Source of the DNA: Eukaryota sp. TZLM1-RC
Lineage: Eukaryota; Protista; Metamonada: BaSk clade
Assembly: GCA_040285825.1 (NCBI GenBank)
Contig: JAUPSS010000007.1
Span: forward strand, 2,578,689 to 2,642,688
Length of the DNA: 64,000 bases
Direction: 5' to 3'
The notes beneath the pieces were generated by a model. It had not been told where the DNA came from and did no database searches. It saw nothing but the letters and a program-made list of their open reading frames with translations. Of the stretch, positions 1-57,524 are shown piece by piece. The translations under genes were made by a program, and so were the position numbers. The first letter of the stretch is position 1; every line of letters starts with the position of its first letter.

Positions 1-928
1 TTTACTTGATGTTGATGTCTGTAAAATACCATCTGATCCTGAAGTTGCCAAATCCAAATACCCCAAGTCAGTTAGCTTGAAATGTCTGATGCCAAGTGGT
101 GTTGCCTGTCCTATACCATCGTACAATCCTGAATCTCAAAGAGTATCTGTTAAAACGTTATCAGCACTGTTTGTTTTGGAACGATTTGTTTTAAAGGATT
201 CTATTTTTAGAAAGGAATATCTTGGAGCAATTCAAATTCGTGCTCAGTTGGCTGTGATTAATTCAACATTATCTCAGTTGCCCAATGTTTTGGCTTCCCT
301 TCCTCCCTCTTTGATGAATGTGAAATTCATACCCAAGCTTACCAAATGGTCCTTTAAAGGCGACAAAGCTTCATTTAAAATTCGTGTGGATCAGGCTGAA
401 AGAATACAGAATCAATTGCGAGAGGCTAACTGTGCCAGTTTGGTGTCGTTTGAATCTGTTCATCCGAGTTTCCAACCATCAAGTACTGATTTTCTTCAAG
501 TTCACTGCAAGTACTTACTTAATCGGTTCTCTGATTTCTGTACCTCGTACAGTGGTGGAAAATTTGAGAACATTCCGCTTATACTGGAAAATCATGTTCT
601 TCCTCCCGATTCCAAAGTTCAACCTTATCATAGAGTAGGCTTAAATAAGACCAATTTCCTTCGCTGCTGTAAAGCTTGTGTACCTGTTTTTTATGATGTT
701 CACCAATGGGATTGTAGTCATCAATTTGGCCCTTTGGTTCCACTGTTTACGCAGGTTTTGAAGAAGCTGGGCATGGTCTATTCTGCAGTATACGACGAAG
801 AAATTCCGTTCATGAAACGGAAAAGTAACGCAAAGAAGTATCTTCTCTATCTCCTGCACCATGATCTTTTCAATGAAAAGGTACAGCCAGCGAATCTGAA
901 GCTTATCTGGGAGCAACAATTCAACTAA
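1..928 (+). CDS. 3' part of multicopy tandem 3'-5' exonuclease-domain protein (copy 1; runs off the window start)
   Basis: Nearly identical in DNA and protein to the C-terminal part of 53767..56759; shared 3' UTR continues to ~1010. Confidence 0.85.
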   Translation, partial: LLDVDVCKIPSDPEVAKSKYPKSVSLKCLMPSGVACPIPSYNPESQRVSVKTLSALFVLERFVLKDSIFRKEYLGAIQIRAQLAVINSTLSQLPNVLASLPPSLMNVKFIPKLTKWSFKGDKASFKIRVDQAERIQNQLREANCASLVSFESVHPSFQPSSTDFLQVHCKYLLNRFSDFCTSYSGGKFENIPLILENHVLPPDSKVQPYHRVGLNKTNFLRCCKACVPVFYDVHQWDCSHQFGPLVPLFTQVLKKLGMVYSAVYDEEIPFMKRKSNAKKYLLYLLHHDLFNEKVQPANLKLIWEQQFN

Positions 929-1034
929 CTCAATACGTGTGCTTTAAATTTACAACTGTCAATTGTTTTGTTTTTGTTATAATTGTATGAATTTTTATTT
1001 GAATAGAGAATTATATATATTATATATGATATAA

Positions 1035-1064
1035 GCATATTATATAAACCTTAGGGCGCCAACA
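1035..1064 (-). repeat. Remnant of the 5' end of an LTR related to the 27048..28408 element
   Basis: Reverse complement of 1049-1064 is TGTTGGCGCCCTAAGG, identical to the first 16 nt of the 92-bp LTR; similarity continues with mismatches (TTTATATAATATG vs CTTATATGTTATG). Confidence 0.7.
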
Positions 1065-1088
1065 CCTGTACATATTCGTCATACAGAT

Positions 1089-3289: not shown

Positions 3290-4715
3290 CTACTGCTGTC
3301 TCCTTAGACGTCTCACACGCCTTGGCCTTCTGAATGGTTTAGGCCTAGTACCAGTGAAATACTCACTAATTGCAATCTCCAGCTGGTTTCTGGAGGCTGA
3401 GATGTCCCTAGACCAGTTGGTCTGACATCGAGGGCAATCGAACTTAGCGTTATTTACCCTTCCGTCATCATGATAGATCTTTCTATGAAAGACCTTACAG
3501 CAATTCAGTTTTGCTGAGGTCATAAACTCGTCCCCGACTTTGAGGCTTTCAAAGTGTTTTTTGATTTGTTTGAGAAATCTCTTTTGGGGGGATTTCACAG
3601 ATGGACCACCACCGCCATTGCCGAACCAAACAATAGTGTTTCTTCCTTCAGACAAGCGTTTAATTTTGTTAGTAAAACTAGTTATTCTCTTTTGCCTTCG
3701 TATGAAGAAATCAAACTTATTTCTTCTCAACTTTTTTCTTACACCACGCTGTAAATTTCCAGACATAATTGAAGCATATTCAGGCTCTTCCTCAGATTCA
3801 GGAACATAAGGTAAACTTATTTCAATCAGATACTCTTGGACGCTCTGAGCGGAATAAGTGTTAGGAGTTGCTTGAGTGAGAGGAGGAGGGTGATTTAGTC
3901 TTCGTTCTTTTGGATTCAGTAGCAGTCCAGAATGTTCAAAAACAGGTGCAGAATTTCGGAAAGAACCAGCAGTCCACAAAGATTGCTACAAAAAACAAAT
4001 TTTCATCAGGATCTCTGTAATTGGGTTGTTATTCCACTGGTAACCGCGGTCTTCTCTGTGGATTTGCTGTGCTATGGACATTGGATTTTCGTTTTGGATT
4101 TCCACCAATATATGCGTTGGCTGTTATATTGAGCCAATGGATCAAGATATGCTTGTGTATTTCTTGGTACAATTGTAAAATTGACTCATCTGGATGAATC
4201 CCTTGAAGTACACATTCGGCGTACTTCTTGGGGCAGGGGCAATTTAGAAACTGAGCACATCTCTTGAAAAAATTGCGTTTCTAGACAAAAGGGTCGTCAG
4301 CAAACAACTGACAAAAAACTTCTCACAGTGGGATGGCTCGACTGCCAAGAAGAGTGGAAATACACCAAGATCTCCCATCGTTGGCTGAGGTGGTTTCATT
4401 CAGCGGTCGCCAAGGCCAAAAGTGCCGAACAAGGTGTTGCAGCGCTTGGTAAACCAAAGGATGGTTCTCAAATGGCCTCCTTTGTTTAGGCTCACGTTGG
4501 CAAACAAAGTCGAAACAGAGGCTCCAGAACTGGCTTTGAGTAAGCCACATAGAGTGTTCTGGGTATTGGAGCACAAAGAGTCGTGATGGGTGAGTAGCAT
4601 GAGCTCCGATACTAGTAAGAACTTGGAACTGGCGTTCCATAGCTTCTTGTGCCTCTGAGTCGAAGAACTGGTTGACAGACGCTCCTACAGCTGTAGTTTG
4701 TAGAACTTTATCCAT
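3290..4715 (-). pseudogene. Fanzor (eukaryotic TnpB/OMEGA RuvC nuclease), decayed
   Basis: C-terminal ORF carries IVWFGNG, RuvC-II DEFMTS, Zn finger C..C/CPRC, RuvC-III WSRDISASRN and terminal G.RP..F.R. N-terminal ORF 4323-4715 resembles a Fanzor1 N-terminus. The middle has stops and frameshifts. Confidence 0.8.
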
Positions 4716-7072: not shown

Positions 7073-8743
7073 GGCCAAAAAATCTCAATTTGACAGAAAC
7101 GAATTCAAGACTCTGATTTTTCCTACTGTTTTGTATGTCTACTATCTAGATAATGTTCCACCGGTAATGTTAACTCACAAATCAGGACTGTCTTCCTAGA
7201 TCCATCCATATTTTTTGAGATAGGAATTGGACCACTTAACTTAGTCACAACTAAATGAAAATCTACATAATGATTTGTGTGATAAGGTTAATCTGATGCT
7301 GTAAGGTGAGACATTTATACAGATAAGGAATAAGATGTTTATTGAATTTCACTGGTCCTTATAAAGGCCATCACTAGTGCAGCATCCATCTTTGATAATA
7401 AATGTACTAGAACTATTTGTCCACAGTACAACAAATCACAGTAAATTCTTTATGATCTAGGCAGGTAGAGGTGAACAAAACTATTTAAAATTGAATCATC
7501 TCCCCATTTAGGTCTACTTTGTTTTTCAAAAATTGAATTACTTGGACAACTGAAAACAATGTGACACAATATGGCAGATAGATTGACTCAATGAACACAC
7601 AGGGGACAATAGATCCATGAGGCAATTTCCCAAAATTTTCCATCAATAAAGGCTATCAGCAGTAGGTAATACACTCAAGGAAAAATTATTGCACTTGATG
7701 ATTCTAGCAAGGTAGATCAACACGAACAGCCAATGATGATCAGCATTCATATTTTCCGAGTTTAATATGACATTGTTAATTTAAGATTGAACTCTACACT
7801 CTCTGAATGTATGGATTCTTCTTTGATTCTCGTTTTTTTTAATTTTGGAAATAATTTTCGTACGATTTTCGGTATTTGTTAATCAATTTCTTTCTTCAAC
7901 CAGTAGAGAATATTTCTCCAACTGATCCATTGGATTATGTATTGGATTATTGTTTTCAGAGACCGCAATAGGACAAACATCCATTTTAGAACAATTACTG
8001 TTGTAAGAGGTGAAGTATAGAAAGAAAATATTATTCCCAAAATTATTGATTACTCATTAAACTTGGGTGACAACGATCACACAACTAAATCTACAGCAGA
8101 ATGGGAAGCAACTGTATCCCAAATTCAATTCCAAAAATTGAAGATTTGACACATTAGTAGAGTATTTTTAACAATTTTTTTGTAAATACTATATTTTATG
8201 GAGGCTATCATGAATAATTATTGAAAAAATTGAGATGATGAAACTGATATCAAAGATTCAAATCAGTAGATCCCAGCCAAGTTGTTACTGAGATTGGAAA
8301 TTGGGAACAACAATTTTTTTGAGATTTAAAGAACCTAACAAAGGAAAACGGTTGAGCATTAATCTTTTAAATTGATGAATTTCGAATCAGGAGTTGATGT
8401 TTCAATTGGAAGAAAGCGGAGAAAACAGTTGAAGTATTCCGATGGCATAGAAGTAAAAGGCCTTGAAAAAGACCTGAGATTATTGTAAACCACAGCCTGA
8501 TCATGTGTAAATCATCCGAAAGTTTGTGGAATTGAGACCAAAATGCTTCATCAAAAGCGCTGGGAGTGATGGATACCCGTAATAATGGTGGAGATTGATC
8601 AGTATTCCTACAGAGATCCACGGTTGCTGAAGGTTTTAAAAAGCACAAATAATTGAGAAAATCTTCCACTTTCCAGAAGCTGAATTACTCAACATTGGTG
8701 TAAAAGGACACTTATTCCATTGTTATAGACAATATCTGCAATA

Positions 8744-10126
8744 ATGACTTCTTCTCGAGGAGATTCTCCTCCTTGTTTAGATGACTTTGAGGACTCTTTT
8801 GACAGCATTTCAATACGTAAACTTCAACGTGAGCTTGCTGAAAAGGACAGCACAATTTCACAACTTGAGCTTGAGATTGAAGCTTTGCTGACAAATCACC
8901 ATGAAAGTTCAGTCACCTCCAAAGTGGCAGACCTGATTAAACGTAATCGTTCTCTTCAACTAGCTCTTGAACAGGAGAGGAATGCACATAAACTAACCCA
9001 ATCCCAAGCCACCAAACCCTCCCCTCCCTCTTCAGCTCCCTCTTCTTCTAATGATAACTCAACAATGCAAGTACGAAGAGACTTTCAGGCTAAGATGAAC
9101 CGTGCACTGAGTAAAATTGGAGACTTAACCACACAATTGGAAAAACAAAAATCTGAAAACATCAAACTTGTTAAAATATTATCAAGAGAATTGGGTGATG
9201 TGTCACTTGATTCATTACTCAATGATGAAAGACCTACTTGGAAAGGAAGAGCCCAAACGATAATGTCCCTCAAGCACCAAATCATGAATTTGAAGCAAAA
9301 GTTGGGTGATGAAGAAGATAACCCTAACCCTAACCCTAACTCTAACCCTAATAGAAATAGGGAACTTGAGGTTTATGCTAAAGTGAGGGAAAAGGTAAAA
9401 AAGGAAGTTGAACAAGAAATGGAGTCATTAACTTGTAATTATAATCAAGAACGTCATCGATTGAAGGCAACTCTAGCAAGAGTTTCTGTTTTAGAAAAGG
9501 AACTTGCCGATTTGAAGGGTCATTTACAGCAAGTAGTGACGAAAACTAAGAACGACAATCGTTATATACAAGCTCTAAAAAAGGAAATAAGCAAACAATC
9601 AAAATTGATTGGTGATGAGGGTCATTCTGATTTGATTAACGAGCTGGAATCAACTAAAGAAAGGTTATCTATTATGGAAAAGAAATACGGAACTCTCACC
9701 AAGGAACTCGAGGTGACACGTGTCACTGCCACGTCACAGTCCACAGAAGTCTTGGAGCGTGAATTGACTTCTTTAAATAAACTCTGTGATGATTTAAGGA
9801 ATAGATTAGTTGGTGCAGAAAAAGATAAGGCAGATGCTCTCTATGAGTTAAGAAAGTTGGTTGTTCAGCATGGAATTGAGGGTGCAATTGATGGTGTTGG
9901 GGATGATGAATATGATTTCGAAAGGAGTACTTCTAACTCTGTTTTATTGGAAAAAAGGCTTGGACTGTTAGAAAATGAATTAAAAATATATAAGGAAATT
10001 ATTCAAGATTTTAATGAATATTTATTAAATAATAATGATGAAAGAGATGCTCTTTATTCTAAATCAAAAACTCAGTTGATGGATTTACAAATTAAATATA
10101 ACGAATTAGTTCAGAATTATCAATAA
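8744..10126 (+). CDS. Coiled-coil protein, CCDC13-like (centriolar satellite/cilia)
   Basis: Long coiled coil with WKGRAQTI and K..NDNRYI.AL motifs typical of CCDC13. Confidence 0.65.
   Translation: MTSSRGDSPPCLDDFEDSFDSISIRKLQRELAEKDSTISQLELEIEALLTNHHESSVTSKVADLIKRNRSLQLALEQERNAHKLTQSQATKPSPPSSAPSSSNDNSTMQVRRDFQAKMNRALSKIGDLTTQLEKQKSENIKLVKILSRELGDVSLDSLLNDERPTWKGRAQTIMSLKHQIMNLKQKLGDEEDNPNPNPNSNPNRNRELEVYAKVREKVKKEVEQEMESLTCNYNQERHRLKATLARVSVLEKELADLKGHLQQVVTKTKNDNRYIQALKKEISKQSKLIGDEGHSDLINELESTKERLSIMEKKYGTLTKELEVTRVTATSQSTEVLERELTSLNKLCDDLRNRLVGAEKDKADALYELRKLVVQHGIEGAIDGVGDDEYDFERSTSNSVLLEKRLGLLENELKIYKEIIQDFNEYLLNNNDERDALYSKSKTQLMDLQIKYNELVQNYQ
9319..9351 (+). repeat. Telomere-type (TAACCC)n repeat inside a CDS
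   Basis: taaccc x3, taactc, taaccc, taa; encodes NPNPNPNSNPN. Confidence 0.8.
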
Positions 10127-22955: not shown

Positions 22956-25900
22956 TTTTTTTTTAATATATTGCAATTTATTAAAGAATCAAATAAAAAC
23001 AAAACAAACTAAAACACATAAGAAACTAAATTCTCCATGCCAACTCTTGATGAATCCTTATACAGCTTGAACATCATTAAATTTAAGTATTTGGGAACAC
23101 TTCTGTACAAAGCGAAAATGATACGATTTTTCCATAAATTCTCTGCAAAATTCTTACCACTTGAACGACATAAATTACCAAAATCATTGATGAAATTCAA
23201 GGCGGATTGTCCAATGTTGCCAAAAATCGAAAAGGCAAAAGGAACAAACGAAAACTTCGAATAAAGGTTCTTATTTAAATCATTTAATATCTCAGTATAT
23301 TTATCTCTCTTACGATCTTCAGCCTTGTTTAAATGACCATGACAACTAAGTAAAACATCATCGCGATAAACAAAAGCAAAGGGATCAACTGTAGTGAAAT
23401 CAACAACAATTTGAGAAGAATCCACAAAAGGAGCAATTAAATCACCTCGACGTGAATTAAAAAGATTATCATCACTATAATGCTTCAACAAAGGTTCTTT
23501 GCAACTAAAATTGTAACACTTGAACATCTCATATGTCACATCACGAACAGCATTATGAAGAACTGACCTATATTGGAGAAATTTCTTACAGCTCACACTA
23601 TGACGAAAATTGGCAGTAGGTTTTTTGTTGCAAATACAATAAGAATTGTCCAAAAGACCACTTGGATACATCCCTAATCTCAACCGCATGTTTTGTTTCC
23701 AAGCTTCATTTGTTAAGTGAAGACCAAATGGCCTTGGTTGCTGAGATATTAAACTAGTACAGTTCTGAATGTCTGATAAAAAGGCAGCAAAGACGGGATT
23801 ATTAATCTTAGTCACACTAAGTCGTTTAGAAAAATCCAGGTCTTCAAAACCAATAAGAACAGACTTCTGTAATTTCACAACAGCAAGATGAAGGTTGGTG
23901 AAAGATCTCGAAGGCACAGCAGGCAAACTTGAAGGAAAACTCCTATTCCAAATATCAACAGGTAGTTCTTGCACCATTTTTTCAAGAGAAATTAATAAAG
24001 GATGTGATTCATTTAAAGGAATATGATCAAAACGAAGTTTCCATTCAAAAGAAAATTTTTCATACCACCAATAAAAGCACTTTTGCATAAATACTCTGCT
24101 TTTGAAAAACCAACTCCACCAAATTTAGGACTAAAAAATGCATGATAAGGAATTTTAGATGGACAAACTTCTACTAAATTTCCTAAGAAATTTGTTCTCA
24201 AAGTATTGAATTGACGTGCAAAATCATGAGAAATTGTGGGAGATAAAGAACGAAGAAGATGATTAATTTTTGATCCAAAACACACATTTAGAACCGAAAA
24301 CACCAAATGTTTGTCAATTTCTAGATCTTGAATAGCCAAAAGTTGCTCTTCGATTTTTTCCAAAATACCTGACAAAATCGATTTAACTTTTTCACTATTT
24401 CCAAAATAAGATCCAAGAAACCGAATAGCATCTTCCTCGTAATCAACGTATTTGATAAAAGTTTCATTAAATGCCACCTGCGCATGCTGATTACCAATAA
24501 TGAAACACTTGGGCAATTTAATGTCTAACCCTATTTGTTTGGCCAGAAAAACAAAATGTTGTAAACCGTGTTGTAAAAGAGACAAAGGGCCAATAAGTGA
24601 TAAATCATCTGCATAAGCACATATATGAATGTCAGGAAAATCCGACTTAAATTTTACCAAAACTGATTGCAGTGCTAAGCAGAAGAAAAATGGACCCAAT
24701 GGATCCCCTTGTTTGACGCCTCTTGACGAAACAATATTCTCAGAATGGAAAATTAAGTTAGTGGGTGATCCATACATCAATTTAAAGTACGGCAAAAGTG
24801 GAGGATAGTGTAGTTCAAGTTCTTGCAAAATACTGGAGCGAAAAACGGAGTTGAAAGCATTTTTAAAATCAATGTTCAATAAATAATTTTCGCCTTTTTG
24901 ATTGAAAAGTAAATCTGTACACAACGCAGCACATGTTGTGCCATCAGGAATTCCGATAGCAAACTGATAAGGACGAAAAAAATTAATTGCGGATGACTTA
25001 ACTCTCTTAAAAGAAATAATTGCTAATAATCTCGTTATGGACTCACCAACAGCAATAGGTCTGACACCACCTCCAGGCTTATTTAAAGCAACTAAACGAG
25101 ATGCCATTAACGCTTGTGGTAACTTGAAACGTCCCATGATGACACTATTAAAAAAAGAAAACTAAATCATCCACGATTTCTGGACATATGTTGACTGCGG
25201 ACTTCAAATGATCATAACTAAGTCCAGAAGGCCCAGCAGAACGACCAGACGGAAGTCTTTTAATAGCTACACTAACTTCATCACAAGTGATAGGATTAGC
25301 AGTGAAGAAATCACGTTCATTATCAGAGACAATGTGATTTATGGTGAAGTCTTCAGGTGGATGAAGAGAATTTAAAGAATCCAAAGTTTCATCATTGAAG
25401 GCAGCAGGAGAAGAACCAGCCAATAATTTAAGTGCTGAAGAGTATTGTGAACGAAGAATCAAAGACTCAAAGCGTTTTTTGACATTTTTAGATTGTGGAA
25501 CCAACTTCTTATATTTAGATTTCTTGTGTGAAGACATAGCCTTAGAAAGAAAAAATTTCCAAAAAATCGAAGGATTCCAAATGCCCTTTCGAAGAGAGAA
25601 GGTTAAAGATCGAATAACTGTTGCAAGAGAAGACGAATGAGCAGGAGAAACGAATTGAGGGATTGCAAATGGAGGTCTACAAGGATCAATTGGCGTGCAA
25701 GAATCACAAACCAAAAGAGGTCGACCCGAAACATTGAATCCAGAAACTGGAGAACAACAGAACAAACATGATTTTGTATTACTACTGACTGAAGACGAAT
25801 GAAGTATATGTGGAGGCTCAATAGACTCAATAGGTGAAGATAATGATGCCAATACAGCTTCATCTGACAAAACTTTTCGCCGAGGACATGTTGTTTTTGT

Positions 25901-26060
25901 GTGACCAACAGTTTTGCACAAAGAACAGGTAGTCACAGAATTCTTAGGGCGTCCTCTAGAAGGTTTTGAAGTAACTGACTTCGGAGTCATAGATAAGCAT
26001 GGAGGGAGAAAAAACACGAAAATTTTATACATTATTTTTATTTTTTTTATTTTATACATT
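22956..26060 (-). mobile_element. Near full-length CRE-like RLE non-LTR retrotransposon (AT-hook, zinc knuckle, RT, CCHC, RLE; ~994 codons split by two 1-nt frameshifts)
   Basis: RGRPK, CSLCKTVGHTKTTC, RPIAVGE, DFKNAFNS, GVKQGDPLGP, AYADD, CIC...RHSVSC, HNAVRD, RGDL..VVDFT, AEDRKRDKY; AATAAA then A9 tail at 22956-22964. Confidence 0.92.
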
Positions 26061-27047
26061 TGACATCACTTTAAGAATTTGACAATATAGAAAAAAATAC
26101 AAATAGTAACAATATATAAGATGTAATTAATTTCGTAATTTAATTTAATTTTTCAATTTCGTAATTAAAATTCGTGTTATCAATGTAGTTGCATCCTTAA
26201 CGAATTAACATTCATAACAGAAATTTTGGTAACCTTGAAAAATCGATGTTTGTCAATATCCTCTTTATCCTGAACAATTATCGATTACAACAAGGATCAG
26301 TTCTCTATTCAAATAAAAATTCATACAATTATAACAAAAACAAAACAATTGACAGTTGTAAATTTAAAGCACACGTATTGAGTTAGTTGAATTGTTGCTC
26401 CCAGATAAGGTTCAGATTCGCTGGCTGTACCTTTTCATTGAAAAGATTATTGTGCAGGAGATAGAGAAGATACTTCTTTGCGTTACTTTTCCGTTTCATG
26501 AACGGAATTTCTTCGTCGTATACTGCAGAATAGACCATGCCCAGCTTCTTCAAAACCTGCGTAAACAGTGGAACCAAAGGGCCAAATTGATGACTACAAT
26601 CCCATTGGTGAACATCATAAAAAACAGGTACACATGCTTTACAGCAGCGAAGGAAATTGGTCTTATTTAAGCCTACTCTATGATAAGGTTGAACATTGCA
26701 ATCGGGAGGAAGAACATGATTTTCTAGTATAAGCGGAATGTTCTCAAATTTTCCACCACTGTACGAGGTACAGAAATCAGAGAACCGATTAAGTAAGTAA
26801 TTGCAGTGAACTTGAAGAAAATCAGTACTTGATGGTTGAAAACTCGGATGAACAGATTCAAATGACACCAAACTGGCACAGTTAGCCTCTCGCAATTGAT
26901 TCTGTATTCCTTCAGCCTGATCCACACGAATTTTAAATGAAGCTTTGTCGCCTTTAAAGGACCATTTGGTAAGCTTGGGTATGAATTTCACATTCATCAA
27001 AGAGGGAGGAAGGGAAGCCAAAACATTGGGCAACTGAGATATTGTTG

Positions 27048-28408
27048 TGTTGGCGCCCTAAGGCTTATATGTTATGATTAGAAAATAAATCAACTTTTCC
27101 TCATTGACTTTTCTTTACTACAATAGACTTTAGGCAACAATAATTATTGGCCATTTTAAAGTCAAAAGGTATATCATAACTCCAGCATTAGTGAACATCT
27201 CCAGACACTTTACAGCATGTCAGACATCTTCCAACCAGATATCTCTGACTCTAATCCCCCGCTTAATATGCAGCAGGTACCAGCGTCACATATACATGAT
27301 ATAGAGGGTAACGAGGCAACGGACCCGGATCCCACCTCCCCCTCCCTTAAAGTAGAAGAAGATGAAAGAGTGGACGAGGTCCCTCCATCTTCAGCAACAG
27401 AAGAGGTAACGAGAACGGACCTGGCTCCCTCTCCCCTCAAAGCAATGGAAGAGGTAACGAGAACGGACCTGGCTCCCTCTCCCCTCCCAATTGTAGAACC
27501 TGTCTCAAAGGGAACGGATGGAAATCCCACCTTAGACACGTCTTCTGCATTAGGAGAATATGAAGAAATTCACATAATCTAAATTTGATGAGATGGAAGG
27601 AGAAGATGACTCCAGTGATGGATCCTCCTAACAAGGACACAGAGCCTTACCTCGAATCAATGGACTTTTATTCATTCGAGTAGCTCTCTTCCTGATGGAG
27701 CCAAACACAAGAGAAGTCGACCAAAAACGAGGTTACGAGTAGAAACTCCACCTCCACTGTTATTGTACTAAAATGCAAAGATACGGTCTTTGTTCCTCTG
27801 ATATTTTTAGTCGTAAAGCCAGTACTTTAACAACAAAAGACGCCGCCTTCAAATTTCTGAAGTTTGTTACTTCGTTTACTGTTGCTTTGATCCAACATAG
27901 ACCCTGCAAGATCATTAGCGAATCCATTCTTCGATTCCATGATACCTTTACTAAACGACACTGCCACGTAACTCGTTTACGAAAAAGGGAAGAAGCAGAG
28001 CGCTTTATGTAGCGATTAAAACATACACAACAAAGTATTCAAACACACAGATCTTGGAACGAGGCCCTTTTCAGTTATTGCTTACTATCTTATACTAACA
28101 TTATTGTAGGAGAGTCATAGTACATCAATTGTCGATCTTAAAAATGTAAAACCAGTGTTTGTGCGAATCCCAATCACTACAGAGATAATTGTAGACAATA
28201 GAAAACAGTAGAATTCAGTATTTAGTTCTTAGTAATTTCAGTTATTTAGTTATTTGTTCATAGTTTTAGTATCATATTCATATAAGCTGATTTATTTTGA
28301 AAAAGGGAAGAAGCAGTGTTGGCGCCCTAAGGCTTATATGTTATGATTAGAAAATAAATCAACTTTTCCTCATTGACTTTTCTTTACTACAATAGACTTT
28401 AGGCAACA
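27048..28408 (+). mobile_element. Non-autonomous LTR retroelement (TRIM-like, 1361 bp)
   Basis: Identical 92-bp LTRs at 27048-27139 and 28317-28408 (TGTTG...CAACA), 4-bp TSD GTTG (27044-47, 28409-12), polypurine tract 28299-28316, no pol. Confidence 0.92.
27217..27582 (+). CDS. Acidic Pro-rich ORF inside the LTR element (possible Gag N-terminal relic)
   Basis: 121-aa ORF with a duplicated EEVTRTDLAPSPL. Confidence 0.4.
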   Translation: MSDIFQPDISDSNPPLNMQQVPASHIHDIEGNEATDPDPTSPSLKVEEDERVDEVPPSSATEEVTRTDLAPSPLKAMEEVTRTDLAPSPLPIVEPVSKGTDGNPTLDTSSALGEYEEIHII

Positions 28409-30929
28409 GTTGACTTAATCACAGCCAACTGAGCACGAATTTGAATTTCTCCAAGATATTCCTTTCTAAAAATAGAATCCTTTAAAACAAATCGTTCCAA
28501 AACAAACAGTGCTGATAACGTTTTAACAGATACTCTTTGAGATTCAGGATTATACGATGGTATAGGACAGGCAACACCACTTGGCATCAGACATTTCAAG
28601 CTAACTGACTTGGGGTATTTAGATTTGGAAACTTCAGGATCAGATGGTATTTTACAGACATCAACATCAAGTAAATCGGAATGGTAAAGAACATCTGCAT
28701 CATTACTTAAGTCTTGAGAGGTGAGATTAACAAAATAATAATTATCAGTTTTCTCCACCGCCTTTTGACGAGCGATTAATTCATCTACCTCTGGTTGAGC
28801 AGATGGAATTGTACATTGAACTGGTACAGAGTTTGCTGTTTGCAAGTTATACTTTTTCATCAATAACCACATGCTGAAGCATATAGTTACATCTTCAGAG
28901 CATGGGCTAAGAGGGTAACTATCACAATACCCGTACACTGGCAAGGAAGAAGACATTTTAGGATCATAAAGGGAAAGATTAGGTCCAAATAATTGGCAAA
29001 ATTCATTATTTGCAGAATCATATTGATTACCAAAGTCAACAAATCCACAAAGTTTTTCCAAGCAAAAGAACTCACCAACATGGGAAATGGGACAGTCTTT
29101 GCCCATGAAGTACTTTGTAATTGCTCCATTGGACAACAGAGCTTCTAGTAATGGATTAATTTCTCTATTATAATCAGTAATGAGTTCAACAATACTGGTA
29201 TCCGTGGCGAACGTAATGGTATCCGAAAGTGTTGTTGTTGAACAAGCATAAACAGCTACAATAGGATTCTCGAGATTGATGGAGTTGATAAGGTTGTTGA
29301 GAGCATCATTTATATTTTCATCCTTTGAGTTACATTTACAGACACTTACAGGATTCATTCCAGAGCACAACAGCTTATTGTTAATGCATTCTGCCAAAAT
29401 GGAGCAATAAGAGGTGATAATTGGATCAACAAAGTCCATACATGGTTCCACATTGAACATTGATTCATCCAAGGTGATCGTTTTGAATAAATCAAGGCTC
29501 AAAGGGTCATAGTCCACGATTTCAGCAAATGCGTAATAGGCAACTGTTAGATTATAAAGAGCAAACCTCTTTTGATTAGAGAATGAAAGAAACACGTCAG
29601 GAGCGTTACTACCGCCAACTGTTCTAAAGACAGCAAAACAAACTATTCTACTGGCCAGCTGGGCAAATTCAAGAGGTTCAATGGTACCAGAACATTTGAG
29701 GTAAGAGTACGCATTGCGGAGATTAATCTTGTCCAGATTCTTCACCTTAGTAAGTACTTTACATAGAAACTGAGTAAATAGAGAGATGGAGTTGAGCAAA
29801 AACTGTGGATCTTTGAATGAAGTTCTTGGTAAGAGCTTCCGGTCATTCTTTACTTCATGAACATCACAACAGAACAATTTGAGCTCACGGAGAGCAGTAA
29901 TAAAGCTCTTTGAATCTATTCTGGGTAAGTAGGTTCTAAAAGGAGTCCTTCTCGCAAGAGAGGAGTCTTTCAGATCAAACCACCTACGGAAATACACACA
30001 AGGACTTTCCAAGGGCGGTGGAACTCTTCCAATACCATATTGCTTCATTATGGAGTAGTTAAACGCAATGCAATATGCTTCAAGTGCAGCATAGTCTACT
30101 TGTTCTTGGGTTAGAGTCTCTGCACTCCAATTTGACATTGTAGTGGATTCATCCCTGGGAAGTAGACATTTGAAACCATGTGCTGCAAATGTACAAGCAG
30201 GGTGGGACGGTTTACCAATCTGTTCCACTCCCTGACCTGTTCGGTTTTGATAGAGCATTTCTATCGTCCTGAAACAGCCTTCAATATCGAAAACCGGGGA
30301 AACATTAACCTTCCAATACTTGTTCATACGTCCTAAGATCTCGTTCTTGGTCTTGAAGACTTTCAAAATGGAAGAGGTAAGAAGTTCTTTCAAGTGAGGA
30401 TTTAGAGTCTTTTGCTGATGAATCTGAATGACAACGCACATTGAAGGTGTACCTAATTGGAGGACATCAAGAAGATTATCACGCCATTCAGCATCAACCG
30501 ATATAAAAGGTTTAGAACTGCTCATGCTGCCCTTGAGCATCTCAACAACAGGGTAGATAAGATCATCATTATCTCTCGTAGAGAGAGAAGGTATAGGGGA
30601 ACGGGTTCAGCATCGTCTATGAACTGAATCATTCTCATAGGAGGCATAGCAGCCTCGTAAGCAGTGTTTGTAATAAGATCATCTTCTGAATCTGAGGATA
30701 GGTAAATCTGTGGTGATCACAAAGCATTAAGGATACCATTGTGGATAATGACAAAAATTTTGGTTTCTGACTCACAAAAACAAGAGTTATATTCCTGGAA
30801 CAGACACGGTTTACAACTCAAACAAAACCTTAATTAATATTTCAACACACTCAATATTCCATCAATTGAATGACGGGAGATTTTTGATATTCACTTGAAT
30901 AGCAACTCGCTTGTTATAAAACTCTGTAA

Positions 30930-31531
30930 TGTTATTCAAAATGAAGTTAATATAACAAGGAAGAGCTTTCAATAGCAAGAATACAATTCTGTTCTTCCAA
31001 ATCAAAAAATCAAATGTACGATTATTTTCTTTGAGAAGTTTTCCAAAATCATCTAAAAAGTTGAGATCTCCCTATGAGACCAGAAATAGAAATAGCAATT
31101 GAGACAAATTTAATGTTTCTGCCTCTTGAGCCATTGAGATGTTGAAGAAAAGCTTCGTACTTTGATTTCAAGGAAAGCTCTGTAACTTTGAGTCAATGTT
31201 GAATGTCAGAATTGGAACTTCTTTTCTGTGGAGACACAGTAGTACAATCGATAATTAGTTCAGTTCCATCATACCAAGCACAATGAATATCACCTAGTTT
31301 TTGGCTCAAACTGAATGCTAATTCATCAAACAGACGTTCTAAACAAACATGATGATGAGCAGATTTTGACAGATCATAAATACAATCACGTACCGCATTA
31401 TGGACAATTGATCCTTTTTGAGTGAATTTAGAGCAGGAAATTATTTGATCGAAAGAAACATAAACACCACATTTGTTGTTGTTGAACTTAAATTGATTTA
31501 GTAGGTTTCTGTGTATTTCGACTGATGACAT
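30930..31531 (-). mobile_element. Decayed RLE non-LTR fragment
   Basis: VHNAVRD, LGDIHC..LIIDCTTV, and downstream W.NRI.F-like sequence. Confidence 0.65.
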
Positions 31532-32767
31532 GATACTCGTTTATGAATCAGTTTTATCAATAATCTTAGATTTCCTCTCTTTCCTTCGTGTGTTCATCTG
31601 CCTAACGGCACCACATTTACATTTCATATTTGATAAGTTTTGAGAACGAGGCAAATTAGGTCTAATTCGCATTACAATCAAAATTTGAATGTCTAAAGAC
31701 AGTAATCCAAAACTCACAAGATGTGATTGTCACGTGACAACTGAATATGAAATATATCTCGTTATAATGACATCTCTTTAATTATGATTGATACATCTGC
31801 CTTCGAATTTTTCTTCAAGAATTGCTTCTCCAAGTTCGATCCGCGGTCAACCCAATTTTCCCTCTTCGTTTCTCCTAATTAAAAATACATTTTGTTACAA
31901 TGATCAAAATGTTTCTCAAAAGGGATGAACGGATTAACTGTCTTTAATTGTGTAGTCGCAATTAAAATTGAAAAATAAAATTGATAAATATAAAAGAAGT
32001 TTTTTCTTGAATGCCGTATCACACACTCATTTTGTACCTTGTCCATTTCATTTTCCCTACTTGCTCCCTTGAAACAATTGCTTTATTTCTTAAATGATTT
32101 CATTGAAATTGTGACACAATGTACACAATGAGTTTTCGACAAAACTTCTTGGCAGAGCAGATTGATATTTTAACGGTGTTGTCCCCTGGTTACTTTCTGC
32201 TTTGTAATCTTTTGGTCGGTTTTATGAAAGAAAATCTTCCAGTCAATTCTTTTTGGCTGATTTGGTGTGTGACGATACAGAATTTCAATTTCTTGTTTTA
32301 ATTTTTCCTTGAAATAAATTTATGTAGAAAAAAAACCCGAGCTCAACTAATTGAAATTTTTTTCGATAATTCCCGATTGTTGCCTCGCAATTCATTTGAA
32401 GTATTTTCCTCATCAATATTCTGCTCTGAAATTGAGTGAAGTAATGACAACAACAATGTTGGTGAGAATATATCACTAAGTCTTTTTCATCTCATATCTT
32501 ACATCTTATGTGACCACAGAAAAAACAAGGGATAGATTGCTGATATCACTGCATAATGTATGCGTCAGAATTTCATATGATAAAATCAATTTCACGATCA
32601 TTTACATGAATTCAATTTTCTTTTATCCTGGTAAACTATGGAAAGAGTCATATAAAAGTGAAAATTTGCATTCATTTGATTGAGAGATAATTCAAGACAA
32701 AACAATATGAAAACGATAAACTTTATACAAATACTGATACATAAACAAGCTAAATGACAGATAACAC

Positions 32768-52842: not shown

Positions 52843-53766
52843 ATAGAATTTTATTTCTATAAAAATACAGTACTTTAAAAAAAATTGGTACAACTATATG
52901 ACTATTGCAGCATGAAGGAACAGACGATTAAAACAATTGAAGCACAAAGATGATTCATTTTGACTCGCTTTCTGCCAACTACTGAACAATTATGGCTTAA
53001 TACCAAATTCAAAATTTCCAAGGGTAAAAAACGAAATTTCACTGGTATGTTGGTAAACATAATTTTGAAAGTACTCAACAAAACCATCTCAGATTTCGAA
53101 TTATGTTCAGAAATTCCAGAACAGCTCTACCTAAATCTCACAGTAATTAATTTTTTTTCATGTACTCATTTCCAATGAAAGAAATACAAAAAAGCTGTTT
53201 TGTTTGTGTTCACCCAATTTCATTGTACCCAACTGATCTTTTTTTGGTTACAAGTTTGTAGAAGGGCCAAGGAAATAAAGTAAATTATCAATACTTCCAG
53301 AACTCACAAATCATGAATTTCATGGTAAGTTAAACCTAATCTTTCAGTTTTTCATGGGAGTGTAATGGATTTATTTACAGTCCCTACATTTCAACATAAT
53401 ATTCAAGCATCGAATTTGAATCAATTATCGAATTGTTTTTCCTCTACAGAACTATTCCTATTTTCTAACCTTAGAAGTTTTCAGCCTTATGAGAAGGTTT
53501 TGCATAAGTTATAAGAAAAGCCTTTTTACATCATTATTCAAGGAATGAAAATTCAAACAATTTAGTAAACACACAATATGACATCCGTGAGAATAAAACT
53601 TTTGCAACATCACGTTCAACATTTCCGTTTTCAGATACCATGGGGATAAGCTTACGTGTTGAATTTAATGGAAGTGAAAATAAAAAAAATAGGCGGAGTT
53701 GATACTGAATTGCCAAAGAATAAAGTTGACAATTAGTTCTTCCAAAATTTTTGTCATTATTCCTCA

Positions 53767-56759
53767 ATGGTATCGTTAATGCTTTGTGATCACCACAGAT
53801 TTACCTATCCTCAGATTCAGAAGATGATCTTATTACAAACACTGTTTACGAGCCTACTGTGCCTCCTATGAGAATGATTCAGTTCATAGACGATGCTGAG
53901 CCAGTTCCTTTATATCTTCTCTCTATGAGGGATAATGATGATCTTATCTATCCTGTTGTTGAAATGCTTAGGGCCAGCATGGACAGCACTAAACCATTTC
54001 TATCGGTTGATACTGAATGGCGTAATAATCTTCTTGATGTCATTCAATTAGGCACACCTTCAATGTGCGTTGTTCTACAGATTCACCAAAAAAAGTCTCT
54101 CAACCGTCACTTGAAAGAACTTCTTACCTCTTTATCGATTATGAAAGTCTTTAAGGCCCAGTTCGAGGATTTGAAGCGAATCAAGAAGTTTTGGAAGGTT
54201 AAGGTTTCCCCGGTTTTCGATATTGCAGACTATTTCGAGGCCATAGGGAAACTTTATCAAAATCGAACAGGTCAGGGGGTGGAACAGATTGGTAAACCGT
54301 CCCACCCTGCTTGTACATTTGCAGCACATGGTTTCAATTGTCTACTTCCCAGGGATGAATCCACTACAATGTCAAATTGGAGTGCAGAGACTCTAACTCA
54401 AGAACAAGTAGACTATGCTGCACTTGACGCCTACTGGATTGCGTTTCTCTACTCCATAATGAACCAATATGATATTGGAAAAGTTCCACCGCCCTTGGAA
54501 AGTCCTTGTGTGTATTTCCGTAGGTGGTTTGATCTGAAAGACTCCTCTCTTGCGAGAAGGACTCCTTTTAGAACCTACTTACCCAGAATAGATTCAAAGA
54601 GCTTTATTACTGCTCTCCGTGAGCTCAAATTGTTCTGTTGTGATGTTCATCAAGTAAAGAATGACCAGAAGGAATTACCAAAAACTTCATTCAAAGATCC
54701 ACAGTTTTTGCTCAACTCCATCTCTCTATTTACTCAGTTTCTATGTAAAGTATTTACTAAGGTGAAGAATCTGGACAAGATTAATCTCCGCAATGCGTAC
54801 TCTTACCTCAAATGTTCTGGTACCATTGAACCTGTTGAATTTGCCCAGCTGGCCAGTAGAATAGTTTGTTTTACTGTTTTTAGAACATCTGGGGACACTG
54901 ACGCTCCTGACGTGTTTCTTTCATTCTCTAATCAAAAGAGGTTTGCTCTTTATAATCTGACAGTTGCCTATTACGCATTTGCTGAAATCGTGGACTATGA
55001 CCCTTTAAGCCTTGATTTATTCAACACGATCACCTTGGATGAATCAATGTTCAATATGGAACCATGTATGGACTTTGTTGATCCAATTATCACCTCTTAT
55101 TGCCTCATTTTGCCAGAATGCATTAACAATAAGTTGCTGTGCTCTGGAATGAATCCTGTAAGTGTCTGCAAATGTAACTCAAAGGATGAAAATATAAATG
55201 ATGCTCTCAACAACCTTATCAACTCCATCAATCTCCAGAATCCTATTGTAGCTGTTTATGCTTGTTCAACAACCACACTTTTGGATACCATTACGTTCGC
55301 CACGGATACTAGTATTGTTGAACTCACTACTGATTATAATAGAGAAATTAATCCATTACTAGAAGCTCTGTTGTCCAATGGAGCAATTACAAAGTACTTC
55401 ATGGGCAAAGACTGTCCCATTTCCCAAGTTGGTGAGTTCTTTTGTTTGGAAAAACTTTATGGATTTGTTGACTTTGGAAATCAATATGATTCTGCAAATA
55501 ATGAATTTTGCCAATTATATGGACCTAATCTTTCCCTTTATGATCCCAAAATGTGTTCTTCCTTGCCAGTGTACGGGTATTGTGATAGTTACCCTCTTAG
55601 CCCATGCTCTGAAGATGTAACTACTTGCTTCAGCATGTGGTTATTGATGAAAAAGTATAACTTGCAAACAGCAAACTCTGTACCAGTTCAATGTCCAATT
55701 CCATCTGCTCAACCAGAGATAGATGAATTAATCGCTCGTCAAAAGGCGGTGGAGAAAACTAATAATTATTATTTTGTTAATCTAACCTCTCAAGACTTAA
55801 GTAATGATGCAGATGTTCTTTACCATTCCGATTTACTTGATGTTGATGTCTGTAAAATACCATCTGATCCTGAAGTTTCCAAATCTAAATACCCCAAGTC
55901 AGTTAGCTTGAAATGTCTGATGCCAAGTGGTGTTGCCTGTCCTATACCATCGTACAATCCTGAATCTCAAAGAGTATCTGTTAAAACGTTATCAGCACTG
56001 TTTGTTTTGGAACGATTTGTTTTAAAGGATTCTATTTTTAGAAAGGAATATCTAGGAGAAATTCAAATTCGTGCTCAGTTGGCTGTGATTAATTCAACAT
56101 TATCTCAGTTGCCCAATGTTTTGGCTTCCCTTCCTCCCTCTTTGATGAATGTGAAATTCATACCCAAGCTTACCAAATGGTCCTTTAAAGGCGACAAAGC
56201 TTCATTTAAAATTCGTGTGGATCAGGCTGAAGGAATACAGAATCAATTGCGAGAGGCTAACTGTGCCAGTTTGGTGTCGTTTGAATCTGTTCATCCGAGT
56301 TTTCAACCATCAAGTACTGATTTTCTTCAAGTTCACTGCAAGTACTTGCTTAATCGGTTCTCTGATTTCTGTACCTCGTACAGTGGTGGAAAATTTGAGA
56401 ACATTCCGCTTATACTAGAAAATCATGTTCTTCCTCCCGATTCCAAAGTTCAACCTTATCATAGAGTAGGCTTAAATAAGACCAATTTCCTTCGCTGCTG
56501 TAAAGCTTGTGTACCTGTTTTTTATGATGTTCACCAATGGGATTGTAGTCATCAATTTGGCCCTTTGGTTCCACTGTTTACGCAGGTTTTGAAGAAGCTG
56601 GGCATGGTCTATTCTGCAGTATACGACGAAGAAATTCCGTTCATGAAACGGAAAAGTAACGCAAAGAAGTATCTTCTCTATCTCCTGCACAATAATATTT
56701 TCAATGAAAAGGTACAGCCAGCGAATCTGAAGCTTATCTGGGAGCAACAATTCAACTAA
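53767..56759 (+). CDS. ~987-aa protein with an N-terminal DEDDy (WRN/EXD-like) 3'-5' exonuclease and a second degenerate exonuclease fold (copy 3, intact); intron 53770..53798
   Basis: SVDTEW (ExoI), IQLGT, FEDL (ExoII), SNWS...LTQEQVDYAALDA (ExoIII); ATG at 53767 plus a 29-nt intron joins in frame. Confidence 0.85.
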
Positions 56760-57524
56760 CTCAATACGTGTGCTTTAAATTTACAACTGTCAATTGTTTT
56801 GTTTTTGTTATAATTGTGTGAATTTTTATTTGAATAGAGAACTGATCCTTTTAAAAAGGGTCGTAGAAAATAACAGAGTTTGTTTGGCATACTACTTTGT
56901 GTTGATCACATCTCAAAATGGTATTGGGAAGTTTCAGAACATATCATTAAATTTGCTGAAGAAAAGATTTGTAAACAACACTCAGGAACACTAATTGATG
57001 ATATTAAGAATCACACTGAATTGATGTATTTTTGACACTTTTCTTATGTTCGTCATGATATTCAATGTGACTACTTTGGTTATGTTGAAATGAGAAAATT
57101 CGTTGTAGGACAAATCTAGGACACTTGGTCGAGGAGCAGTCCATTGTACAAAACAACCTATATGATGTAGTTGGGACTGAAAAAATAGACGTTACTTGGA
57201 TTTGAGGGGAAATCTTTGTGCGAGACTAAAGCCAACTAAGCATCGACTGACAGCTCTGATTGAAATTGGTCTACTGTACATTCAAGTTCATCAAATTTAA
57301 GGATGTCATGGGATCGATGGAACTACTTGAAATTTCTTTTGGTCAAATACATAGGCTTAAAAAATCGTTGATTTGTAATTATTTTTGAGCTTTTTGAAAA
57401 TTTAGTTACTTTTGAAAGTAATAAATTCATCTTTTTTTTCTCAAAACATTTTCTTATCCTTTTATTCATATTTGAATCATAAGTTTCATCATCTGCTTTT
57501 GTTTTAAAAGTCTTCACCTTTACA

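Follow-up and report, generated by a model that had tools for sequence, protein, structure and literature searches.

Sharply bounded copies of an exonuclease gene form a local, mosaic and Skoliomonas-specific multigene family in the metamonad TZLM1-RC

The 64,000-nt window analysed here, part of contig JAUPSS010000007.1 (assembly GCA_040285825.1) of Eukaryota sp. TZLM1-RC, the anaerobic, free-living metamonad Skoliomonas litria, contains repeated copies of a gene unit that codes for a protein with two exonuclease folds. The unit is the complete gene of a genus-restricted multicopy family, new in the DEDDy exonuclease superfamily. Copy 3 (c3; 53742..56850, + strand) is complete and intact, and its product, P0008, has 987 residues. 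It opens with 25 nt that are common to all copies (53742..53766, +) and contain CAAAATTTT and an initiator-like TCATT motif (53753–53757). There follow a first exon consisting of the ATG alone (53767..53769, +), a 29-nt GT..AG intron with T at -9 and A at -7 (53770..53798, +), a second exon of 986 codons plus stop (53799..56759, +), and a 91-nt 3' untranslated region (UTR), likewise common to the copies (56760..56850, +), with an AATAGA hexamer beginning 21 nt ahead of the border. The one-codon first exon is required by the public gene models P0008 and P0002, and the same layout is found in GEM-RC1, the other Skoliomonas genome considered here; RNA-seq data were used in training the public TZLM1-RC models (PMC11316075). 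Searches were run with exon 2, without the one-codon exon 1, and annotated products were taken by id.

The three copies that a sequence-only reading had placed in the window, with their borders, were reproduced by repeat finding and by BLAST with 300–1000 nt of flank. Copy 1 (c1) contributes only its 3' part to the window (1010 nt, 1..1010, +); past the window edge it is full length (L002 9879–12980), with an intact reading frame and an annotated protein, P0001. Copy 2 (c2; 26292..30763, -) is a pseudogene, with a 2-nt insertion near 30582–30592, an Asp to Ile change in the ExoII motif and an inserted long terminal repeat (LTR) element. A fourth copy (c4; L001 9978 to about 13000; product P0002; 78% amino-acid identity) lies in opposite orientation ~80 kb upstream on the same contig. 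A span of ~155 kb on one 3.2-Mb contig thus holds all four TZLM1-RC copies, which alternate in orientation, and the word search showed no fifth copy in this genome. The intron, which had been noted as retained, is present in all four; over both genomes it measures 28–34 nt, with 34 nt in c1, and c3 and c4 are both annotated with the ATG-only first exon and a 29-nt intron.

The ends of the unit are precise and featureless. In c2 and c3 the 5' border is the identical base, CCAAAATTTTTGTCATT, 25 nt ahead of the ATG, and the 3' border is again the identical base, ...AGAGAACTGATCCTT, 91 nt past the stop; the flanks of the two copies cannot be aligned. The 3' end of c1 stops 10 nt short of the border that c2 and c3 share. 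End comparison confirms that the c2 and c3 borders carry no terminal inverted repeat, target-site duplication or poly(A), and neither inverted or direct repeats nor a subterminal hairpin or other structured end was found at the unit ends. The 3' UTR is no more stably folded than its shuffled versions (z +0.84), and Rfam gives no match for it. TCATT-like motifs lie 13–35 nt upstream of the ATG in many TZLM1-RC genes, and that of c3 (53753–53757) is 11–15 nt inside the 5' border; placed within the border as it is placed ahead of other genes, it suggests that the unit carries its own promoter. Judged by these motifs, the 25-nt upstream stretch may comprise a core promoter and a short 5' UTR, and the recurring border 25 nt before the ATG is probably the upstream edge of that promoter. 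The two borders of the unit would then correspond to promoter and poly(A) edges.

The N-terminal part of the protein holds a DEDDy 3'–5' exonuclease domain (53991..54464, +), which matches PF01612 at residues 65–222 (E 1.1e-11; 45.4 bits against a cut-off of 23.6), the sole Pfam domain in the protein. The family profile matches EXD2, NrnC, Mut-7/Nibbler and WRN; the motifs ExoI (D-x-E), ExoII (D) and ExoIII (Y-x3-D) fall in register, and the affiliation with WRN/EXD/Mut-7-type DEDDy enzymes proposed earlier stands. D72, E74, D125, Y207 and D211 are all present in c3 (P0008 numbering), and the same five catalytic residues are kept in c4, aligned to D108, E110 and D171 of EXD2 and to its YAARDA motif; in c1 and c2, Ile replaces the ExoII Asp. 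The N-terminal domain is predicted to be an active 3'–5' exonuclease of the WRN/EXD2/Mut-7 class. Ahead of it, an acidic, Ser-rich motif, L-x-x-SSDSE-x-DL (P0008 residues 2–14, 53799–53840), occurs in all full-length homologues of both species, and presumably resembles CK2-site or SUMO-interaction motifs.

A second exonuclease fold lies further along the same chain, at residues 446–636 (55131..55703, +), and emerged from AlphaFold2 (AF2) modelling and Foldseek comparison of residues 440–987. The AF2 model of this region, built on a 15-sequence alignment, has a predicted local distance difference test score (pLDDT) of 70, and about 70–85 within the fold itself; a full-length model from 7 sequences reached a pLDDT of 41, too poor for use, and the linker between the two folds (residues 226–440) has very low model confidence. 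VIA Z scores for residues 446–636 are 11.3 (1vk0), 10.2 (RNase D), 10.1 (WRN) and 10.0 (EXD1), over 143–168 residues. The region superposes on At5g06450, diDNase, RNase D, WRN, EXD1 and Egalitarian at Z 9–11.3. Foldseek probabilities are 0.95–1.0, the top matches all have the exonuclease fold, and an Atlas search agrees. The tandem-exonuclease description first given to this protein holds at the level of folds, with a PF01612 domain and then a second exonuclease fold that lacks the catalytic acids (Z 11.3). In that second, RNase D/WRN/EXD1-like fold the D-x-E at the end of strand 1 is absent, its place being taken by VAVYACS in TZLM1-RC and VTVFARS in GEM-RC1, and there is no invariant acidic column; the fold is therefore predicted to be inactive. 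Many DEDD enzymes pair as homodimers, and by analogy the second fold might form a pseudo-dimer with the active domain.

The remainder of the protein is an alpha/beta and helical region (55713..56756, +; residues 640–987). No relatives of it were detected outside the family, and sequence searches of Pfam and the PDB with these last 350 residues gave no match, the fold of this part not having been searched separately. Pfam and PDB profiles gave no signature of a transposase, integrase, reverse transcriptase, Rep/HUH protein, tyrosine recombinase or RuvC, again with the C-terminal fold not searched alone. In an ESM Atlas feature search every score was below 0.9, and the matches serve as leads only. 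A Fanzor/TnpB (OMEGA) element was considered and rejected: the protein has no TnpB/Fanzor Pfam match and no conserved C-terminal acidic or Cys residue, and the 3' UTR is unstructured and without an Rfam match.

The family appears to be confined to one genus. An exhaustive search of 1.84 billion representative proteins with a profile of residues 225–987 found 17 matches, every one from Skoliomonas: the TZLM1-RC representative, P0010 (a fragment of c2) and 15 proteins of GEM-RC1, complete or partial, that come from at least six contigs. Counted as copies, whole and fragmentary, GEM-RC1 has at least 17. Among the same 1.84 billion representatives, no protein outside Skoliomonas combines an active exonuclease, a dead exonuclease and this C-terminal domain. 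The gene is thus no conserved low-copy housekeeping gene; it is found in Skoliomonas only and is multicopy in both genomes. In a quick tree, with SH-aLRT (Shimodaira–Hasegawa-like approximate likelihood ratio test) support only and the careful search unfinished, the TZLM1-RC copies form one long-branched clade and those of GEM-RC1 at least four deep subfamilies.

The GEM-RC1 copies lie among ordinary genes, in local clusters and segmental duplications, and keep the layout of ATG plus short intron (28–30 nt). Contig 1 has three copies in ~65 kb, two of them in tandem and with ~490 nt of upstream sequence in common; contig 17 has three in ~20 kb, two of them arranged as a palindrome that also takes in a Sec23/24-family gene. 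This palindrome's arms (JAUFOQ010000017.1, L009 1–3252 and 7184–10549) are 98% identical in the Sec23/24-family gene and 85% identical in the exonuclease gene, which either diverges much faster or has been overwritten by other paralogues. Between the L003 and L004 copies, high identity runs from 25 nt before the ATG to about 190 nt before the stop, so that the 3' end of the identity tract falls inside coding sequence and not at a transcript end. The neighbours of the copies differ between TZLM1-RC and GEM-RC1.

Back in TZLM1-RC, the flanks of the copies tell two different stories. The unrelated flanks noted earlier for c2 and c3 are borne out; c1 and c2 have 883 nt in common upstream of the border at 98% identity (30764..31766, -, at c2, where 123 extra nt lie at 31030–31152). 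With this upstream flank in common, the pair is part of a larger duplication. The flank includes a solo LTR (about 31474–31617) of a second LTR family; the corresponding miniature element, of about 835 nt with ~140-nt LTRs (TGTTGTTG...CTAACGGCA), is seen at L002 2855–3689 (-). Upstream of c3 lies reverse-transcriptase debris of a long interspersed nuclear element (LINE), and its downstream flank is unique. A 24-nt match between 53698–53721 and 54006–54029 was considered as the possible remnant of an earlier copy ahead of c3 and dismissed, as it scores no higher than shuffled controls and tblastx gave nothing. The only public runs that match the stretch are low-depth DNA contigs from one sample, present as short pieces and paralogue variants, and neither transcript ends nor an empty site were seen in them.

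These data bear on the proposal, made from the letters alone, that the unit is a new mobile gene. In its strongest form the 987-residue protein, with two RNase H-like folds and a C-terminal domain, would move its own gene as an autonomous or semi-autonomous element that leaves neither terminal repeats nor target duplications. The sharp ends with unrelated flanks would suit such an element, as would the multicopy state with many fragmentary members on at least six GEM-RC1 contigs and a C-terminal domain of no assigned function. The protein itself points elsewhere, however: both RNase H-like folds belong with the proofreading DEDD enzymes, with DEDDy motifs in the first and no catalytic acids in the second, and the C-terminal domain has no invariant acidic or Cys/His residue. 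The ends lack hairpins or structure, the copies have no conserved target sequence in common, and the sole duplication around a copy, CCTG, flanks the LTR ends of a composite around c1 and not the unit. The copies are clustered and have larger flanks in common, and those of GEM-RC1 sit amid ordinary genes, within segmental duplications. The ~155-kb clustering, the c1/c2 flank that places this one pair in a larger duplication, the block-wise homogenization of old paralogues described next and the lack of transposition machinery or termini all speak against a mobile unit, and we regard self-movement as highly improbable.

The history of the copies was followed by windowed identity, by ratios of nonsynonymous to synonymous divergence (dN/dS) and by quartet-informative sites, and it changes along the gene. 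First, in the block 53996–54263, 34 informative sites group c1 with c2 against c3 with c4, and none supports another grouping. Second, in the block 54342–55741 the four copies are 93–98% alike and the groupings conflict (10 versus 15 sites). Third, in the block 55786–56850, c1 to c3 are 98–99% alike and c4 differs at 312 sites. The synonymous divergence (dS) of c4 is 1.17 in the last 221 codons and 0.05–0.10 in the middle of the gene, against 0.02 among c1 to c3. Such unequal depths along one gene require recombination. We read the mosaic, on the pattern of substitutions, as the outcome of gene conversion between paralogues, c4 at least being old. The gene as a whole is under purifying selection as judged from codon substitutions, with dN/dS of 0.41–0.47 for the whole gene and about 0.25–0.3 in both exonuclease folds; in the linker (residues 226–440; 53799+3*225 to 53799+3*440) the ratio is about 1 (0.6–1.75 between pairs).

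The explanation that we favour, at somewhat better than even confidence, is a Skoliomonas-specific multigene family shaped by local DNA-level duplication and gene conversion, without any self-movement. The copies would have been made locally at the DNA level and then partly homogenized by conversion, and the sharp borders would be the limits within which the loci have retained homology and can hence be converted. The convertible stretch would begin at the 5' limit of the ~25-nt core promoter, extend through the whole 3' UTR and be kept alike by selection and conversion together; beyond it, the old flanks would have decayed or been replaced by retroelement insertions. Conversion would spread up to a homology edge and not past it, and the same end base would therefore appear at all loci. 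For c1, the copying may have been helped by an LTR element, through read-through cDNA or LTR-templated repair. The identity tract of the GEM-RC1 pair that ends in coding sequence fits conversion, and not a transcript-defined unit.

A plainer possibility is that each pair arose by one ordinary dispersed duplication with random breakpoints, the borders coinciding by chance and neither selection nor conversion playing a part. Any single insertional duplication yields two copies with sharp common borders, and the c1/c2 pair and the GEM-RC1 palindrome show that other breakpoints do occur. Chance would nevertheless have to place the 5' border within one base in at least two independent events, and two 3' ends within 10 nt, and the block mosaic would be left unexplained; we consider this account unlikely.

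The surroundings of c1 raise a different possibility. LINE reverse-transcriptase genes or debris adjoin c1, c2 and c3, which bears out the retroelement debris reported at first reading, as do the LTR elements. Among them, a LINE-like element at 23009–26059 (-), with a zinc-finger open reading frame (ORF) followed by an RVT_1 ORF, has the same orientation as c2, and its first ORF starts about 230 nt past the c2 3' border. The LTR element inside c2 (27048..28408, -; 1361 nt) is non-autonomous, with identical 92-nt LTRs (TGTTGCC...GGCGCCAACA) and a 4-bp target duplication, CAAC; with identical LTRs, it is a recent insertion. A relative of 1.3 kb, ~85% alike, lies at L002 7688–8995 (+), and neither has a long ORF; this family with 92-nt LTRs is non-autonomous, ~1.3 kb in length, and makes 4-bp target duplications.

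It is this relative that the shared upstream flank of c1 abuts. At the other end of c1 the junction (1011..1068, +) consists of AT-rich filler (~24 nt), the terminal ~31 nt of the same 92-nt LTR (to 1064) and CCTG (1065–1068); CCTG also precedes the LTR that opens the composite (L002 7684–7687), so that the whole is flanked by CCTG on both sides. The composite contains three LTR pieces, of which the two full LTRs are ~11% apart, against only 2% between its upstream flank and that of c2. At c2, the closest relative of c1 and ~25 kb from it, the LTR is absent from the corresponding place. The joined flanks of the composite, searched as an empty site, gave no match and no reading frame across the junction. 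LTR ends with a 4-bp duplication suggest integration of a read-through cDNA. Local LTR-templated repair, or a cDNA recombining with a resident element, fits at least as well, because the LTRs differ by ~11% and the flank by 2%, c2 has no LTR at that place and the distance is 25 kb. By either route a retroelement was probably involved in the making of c1.

The unit could be a cDNA of the gene's own intron-containing transcript, produced by the abundant reverse transcriptases of LTR elements or LINEs and inserted close by, in which case the 5' border would be the transcription start, the 3' border the poly(A) site, and the short initiator-type promoter would keep the copies expressible. The same 5' border in three contexts would follow directly, as would a similar border in GEM-RC1 that falls right at a TTCATTT initiator-like motif, and the 3' border lies 15–21 nt past the AATAGA hexamer. 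Reverse-transcriptase genes flank c1, c2 and c3, and c1 is bounded by LTR termini and CCTG, 4 bp as is the CAAC at the c2 insertion of the same LTR family. Since c1 is LTR-bounded, ends 10 nt before the 3' border and yet keeps its intron, intron retention is no bar to an RNA route. On the other side, no copy in either species has lost the intron, contrary to what defines a processed retrocopy, and c2 and c3 have neither poly(A) tract nor target duplication. All TZLM1-RC copies lie within 155 kb, where retroposition would be expected to scatter them; the TCATT 13 nt inside the TZLM1-RC border suggests that transcription starts downstream of the border; the divergence of ~11% between the full LTRs of c1, against 2% in the flank, shows that the composite is no simple one-step cDNA; and the GEM-RC1 identity tract stops within coding sequence. 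We hold RNA-mediated copying of this unit to be possible, though doubtful.

A broader version of the same idea is rather more speculative: Skoliomonas gene units in general, from initiator to poly(A) site, might be copied whole through RNA, with the cDNA made by a resident retroelement reverse transcriptase and patched into nearby breaks, leaving neither poly(A) tail nor target duplication. With a promoter that amounts to little beyond an initiator at the transcript start, each cDNA-derived copy would be expressible on arrival. If true, this would be a route of functional gene duplication not described for metamonads.

Several observations weigh against local duplication with gene conversion as the whole account. 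The 5' border recurs at one and the same base (+/-1) in c3, in c4 and in c1/c2, whose contexts are unrelated, and in one GEM-RC1 pair it again lies 25 nt ahead of the ATG; transcript copying, or another mechanism with a defined end, would explain this recurrence more directly than decay plus conversion does. The end of c1, 10 nt before the 3' border and joined to an LTR within CCTG...CCTG, suggests that an RNA 3' end close to the border was used once or more. Finally, c3 is not demonstrably an old locus, being 92–99% identical to c1 and c2 outside its c4-like patch.

Two further features of the window were seen in passing. An ORF at 3290–3979 (-), continuing to about 4260, adjoins a vWA gene and has a weak Pfam match to Cas12f1-like_TNB, the TnpB/Fanzor zinc ribbon. 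A conserved element of ~65 nt with GGTGTAAAAGGACACTTATT (window 8689–8754 and L001 4454–4521; 84% identity) lies directly 5' of the start codon in each of two unrelated genes, one a 460-aa ORF and the other NPL4-like; it may represent a promoter module that the two have in common, or else a small repeat.

In a genome so densely populated by retroelements and Fanzor elements, a nuclease family that is genus-restricted and turns over fast may act in nucleic-acid surveillance or conflict, a role for which it makes a reasonable candidate. A role as an anti-transposon effector is plausible. The sequence-only reading had offered a recently amplified effector as its second option; the lineage restriction, multiple copies and fast turnover of this nuclease family agree with it, and the age of c4 (dS about 1.2 in the 3' third) does not agree with recent amplification. 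Apart from function, a border 25 nt before the ATG that marks a promoter edge would aid annotation in a little-studied lineage, and c1 is a clear case of a cellular gene within an LTR-bounded composite in a free-living metamonad.

Among known exonucleases, the closest parallel is the DEDDy class of WRN-exo, EXD2, Mut-7 (Nibbler) and RNase D (PF01612), to which the N-terminal domain is alike, with catalytic motifs in register. The Skoliomonas protein differs in lacking a helicase, HRDC or Mut7-C partner, in its very low sequence identity, and in adding a dead exonuclease fold and a novel 350-residue C-terminal domain; its family is also multicopy and confined to one genus. The dead fold (residues 446–636) has its own parallels in EXD1, Egalitarian, Exuperantia and At5g06450/RICE-like proteins, on which folds it superposes at Z 9–11, and in EXD1, Egalitarian and Exuperantia the catalytic acids are absent as they are here. 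Unlike in these proteins, it shares a chain with an active fold; it might bind RNA or pair with the active domain as DEDD homodimers do.

Retroelements have captured cellular genes elsewhere, as in retroviral oncogene capture, the plant element Bs1 and yeast events mediated by Ty1 cDNA. Copy 1 and its 883-nt flank resemble these cases in lying between LTR-element sequence and a terminal LTR fragment with a 4-bp duplication. They differ in that c1 keeps its intron and its own promoter, and in the three LTR pieces, the full ones ~11% apart; with c2 only ~25 kb away, local LTR-templated DNA repair is an equally good reading. Gene conversion and concerted evolution of paralogues are known from the bacterial tufA/tufB genes, the globin genes and Y-palindrome genes. 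The Skoliomonas unit matches these in its near-perfect identity inside and unrelated flanks, in its block switches and in its unequal dS, with the differences that its set includes a pseudogene and a copy in an LTR-bounded composite and that conversion is deduced from the pattern. The evidence thus points to a familiar process, local duplication with gene conversion, acting on an unfamiliar gene.

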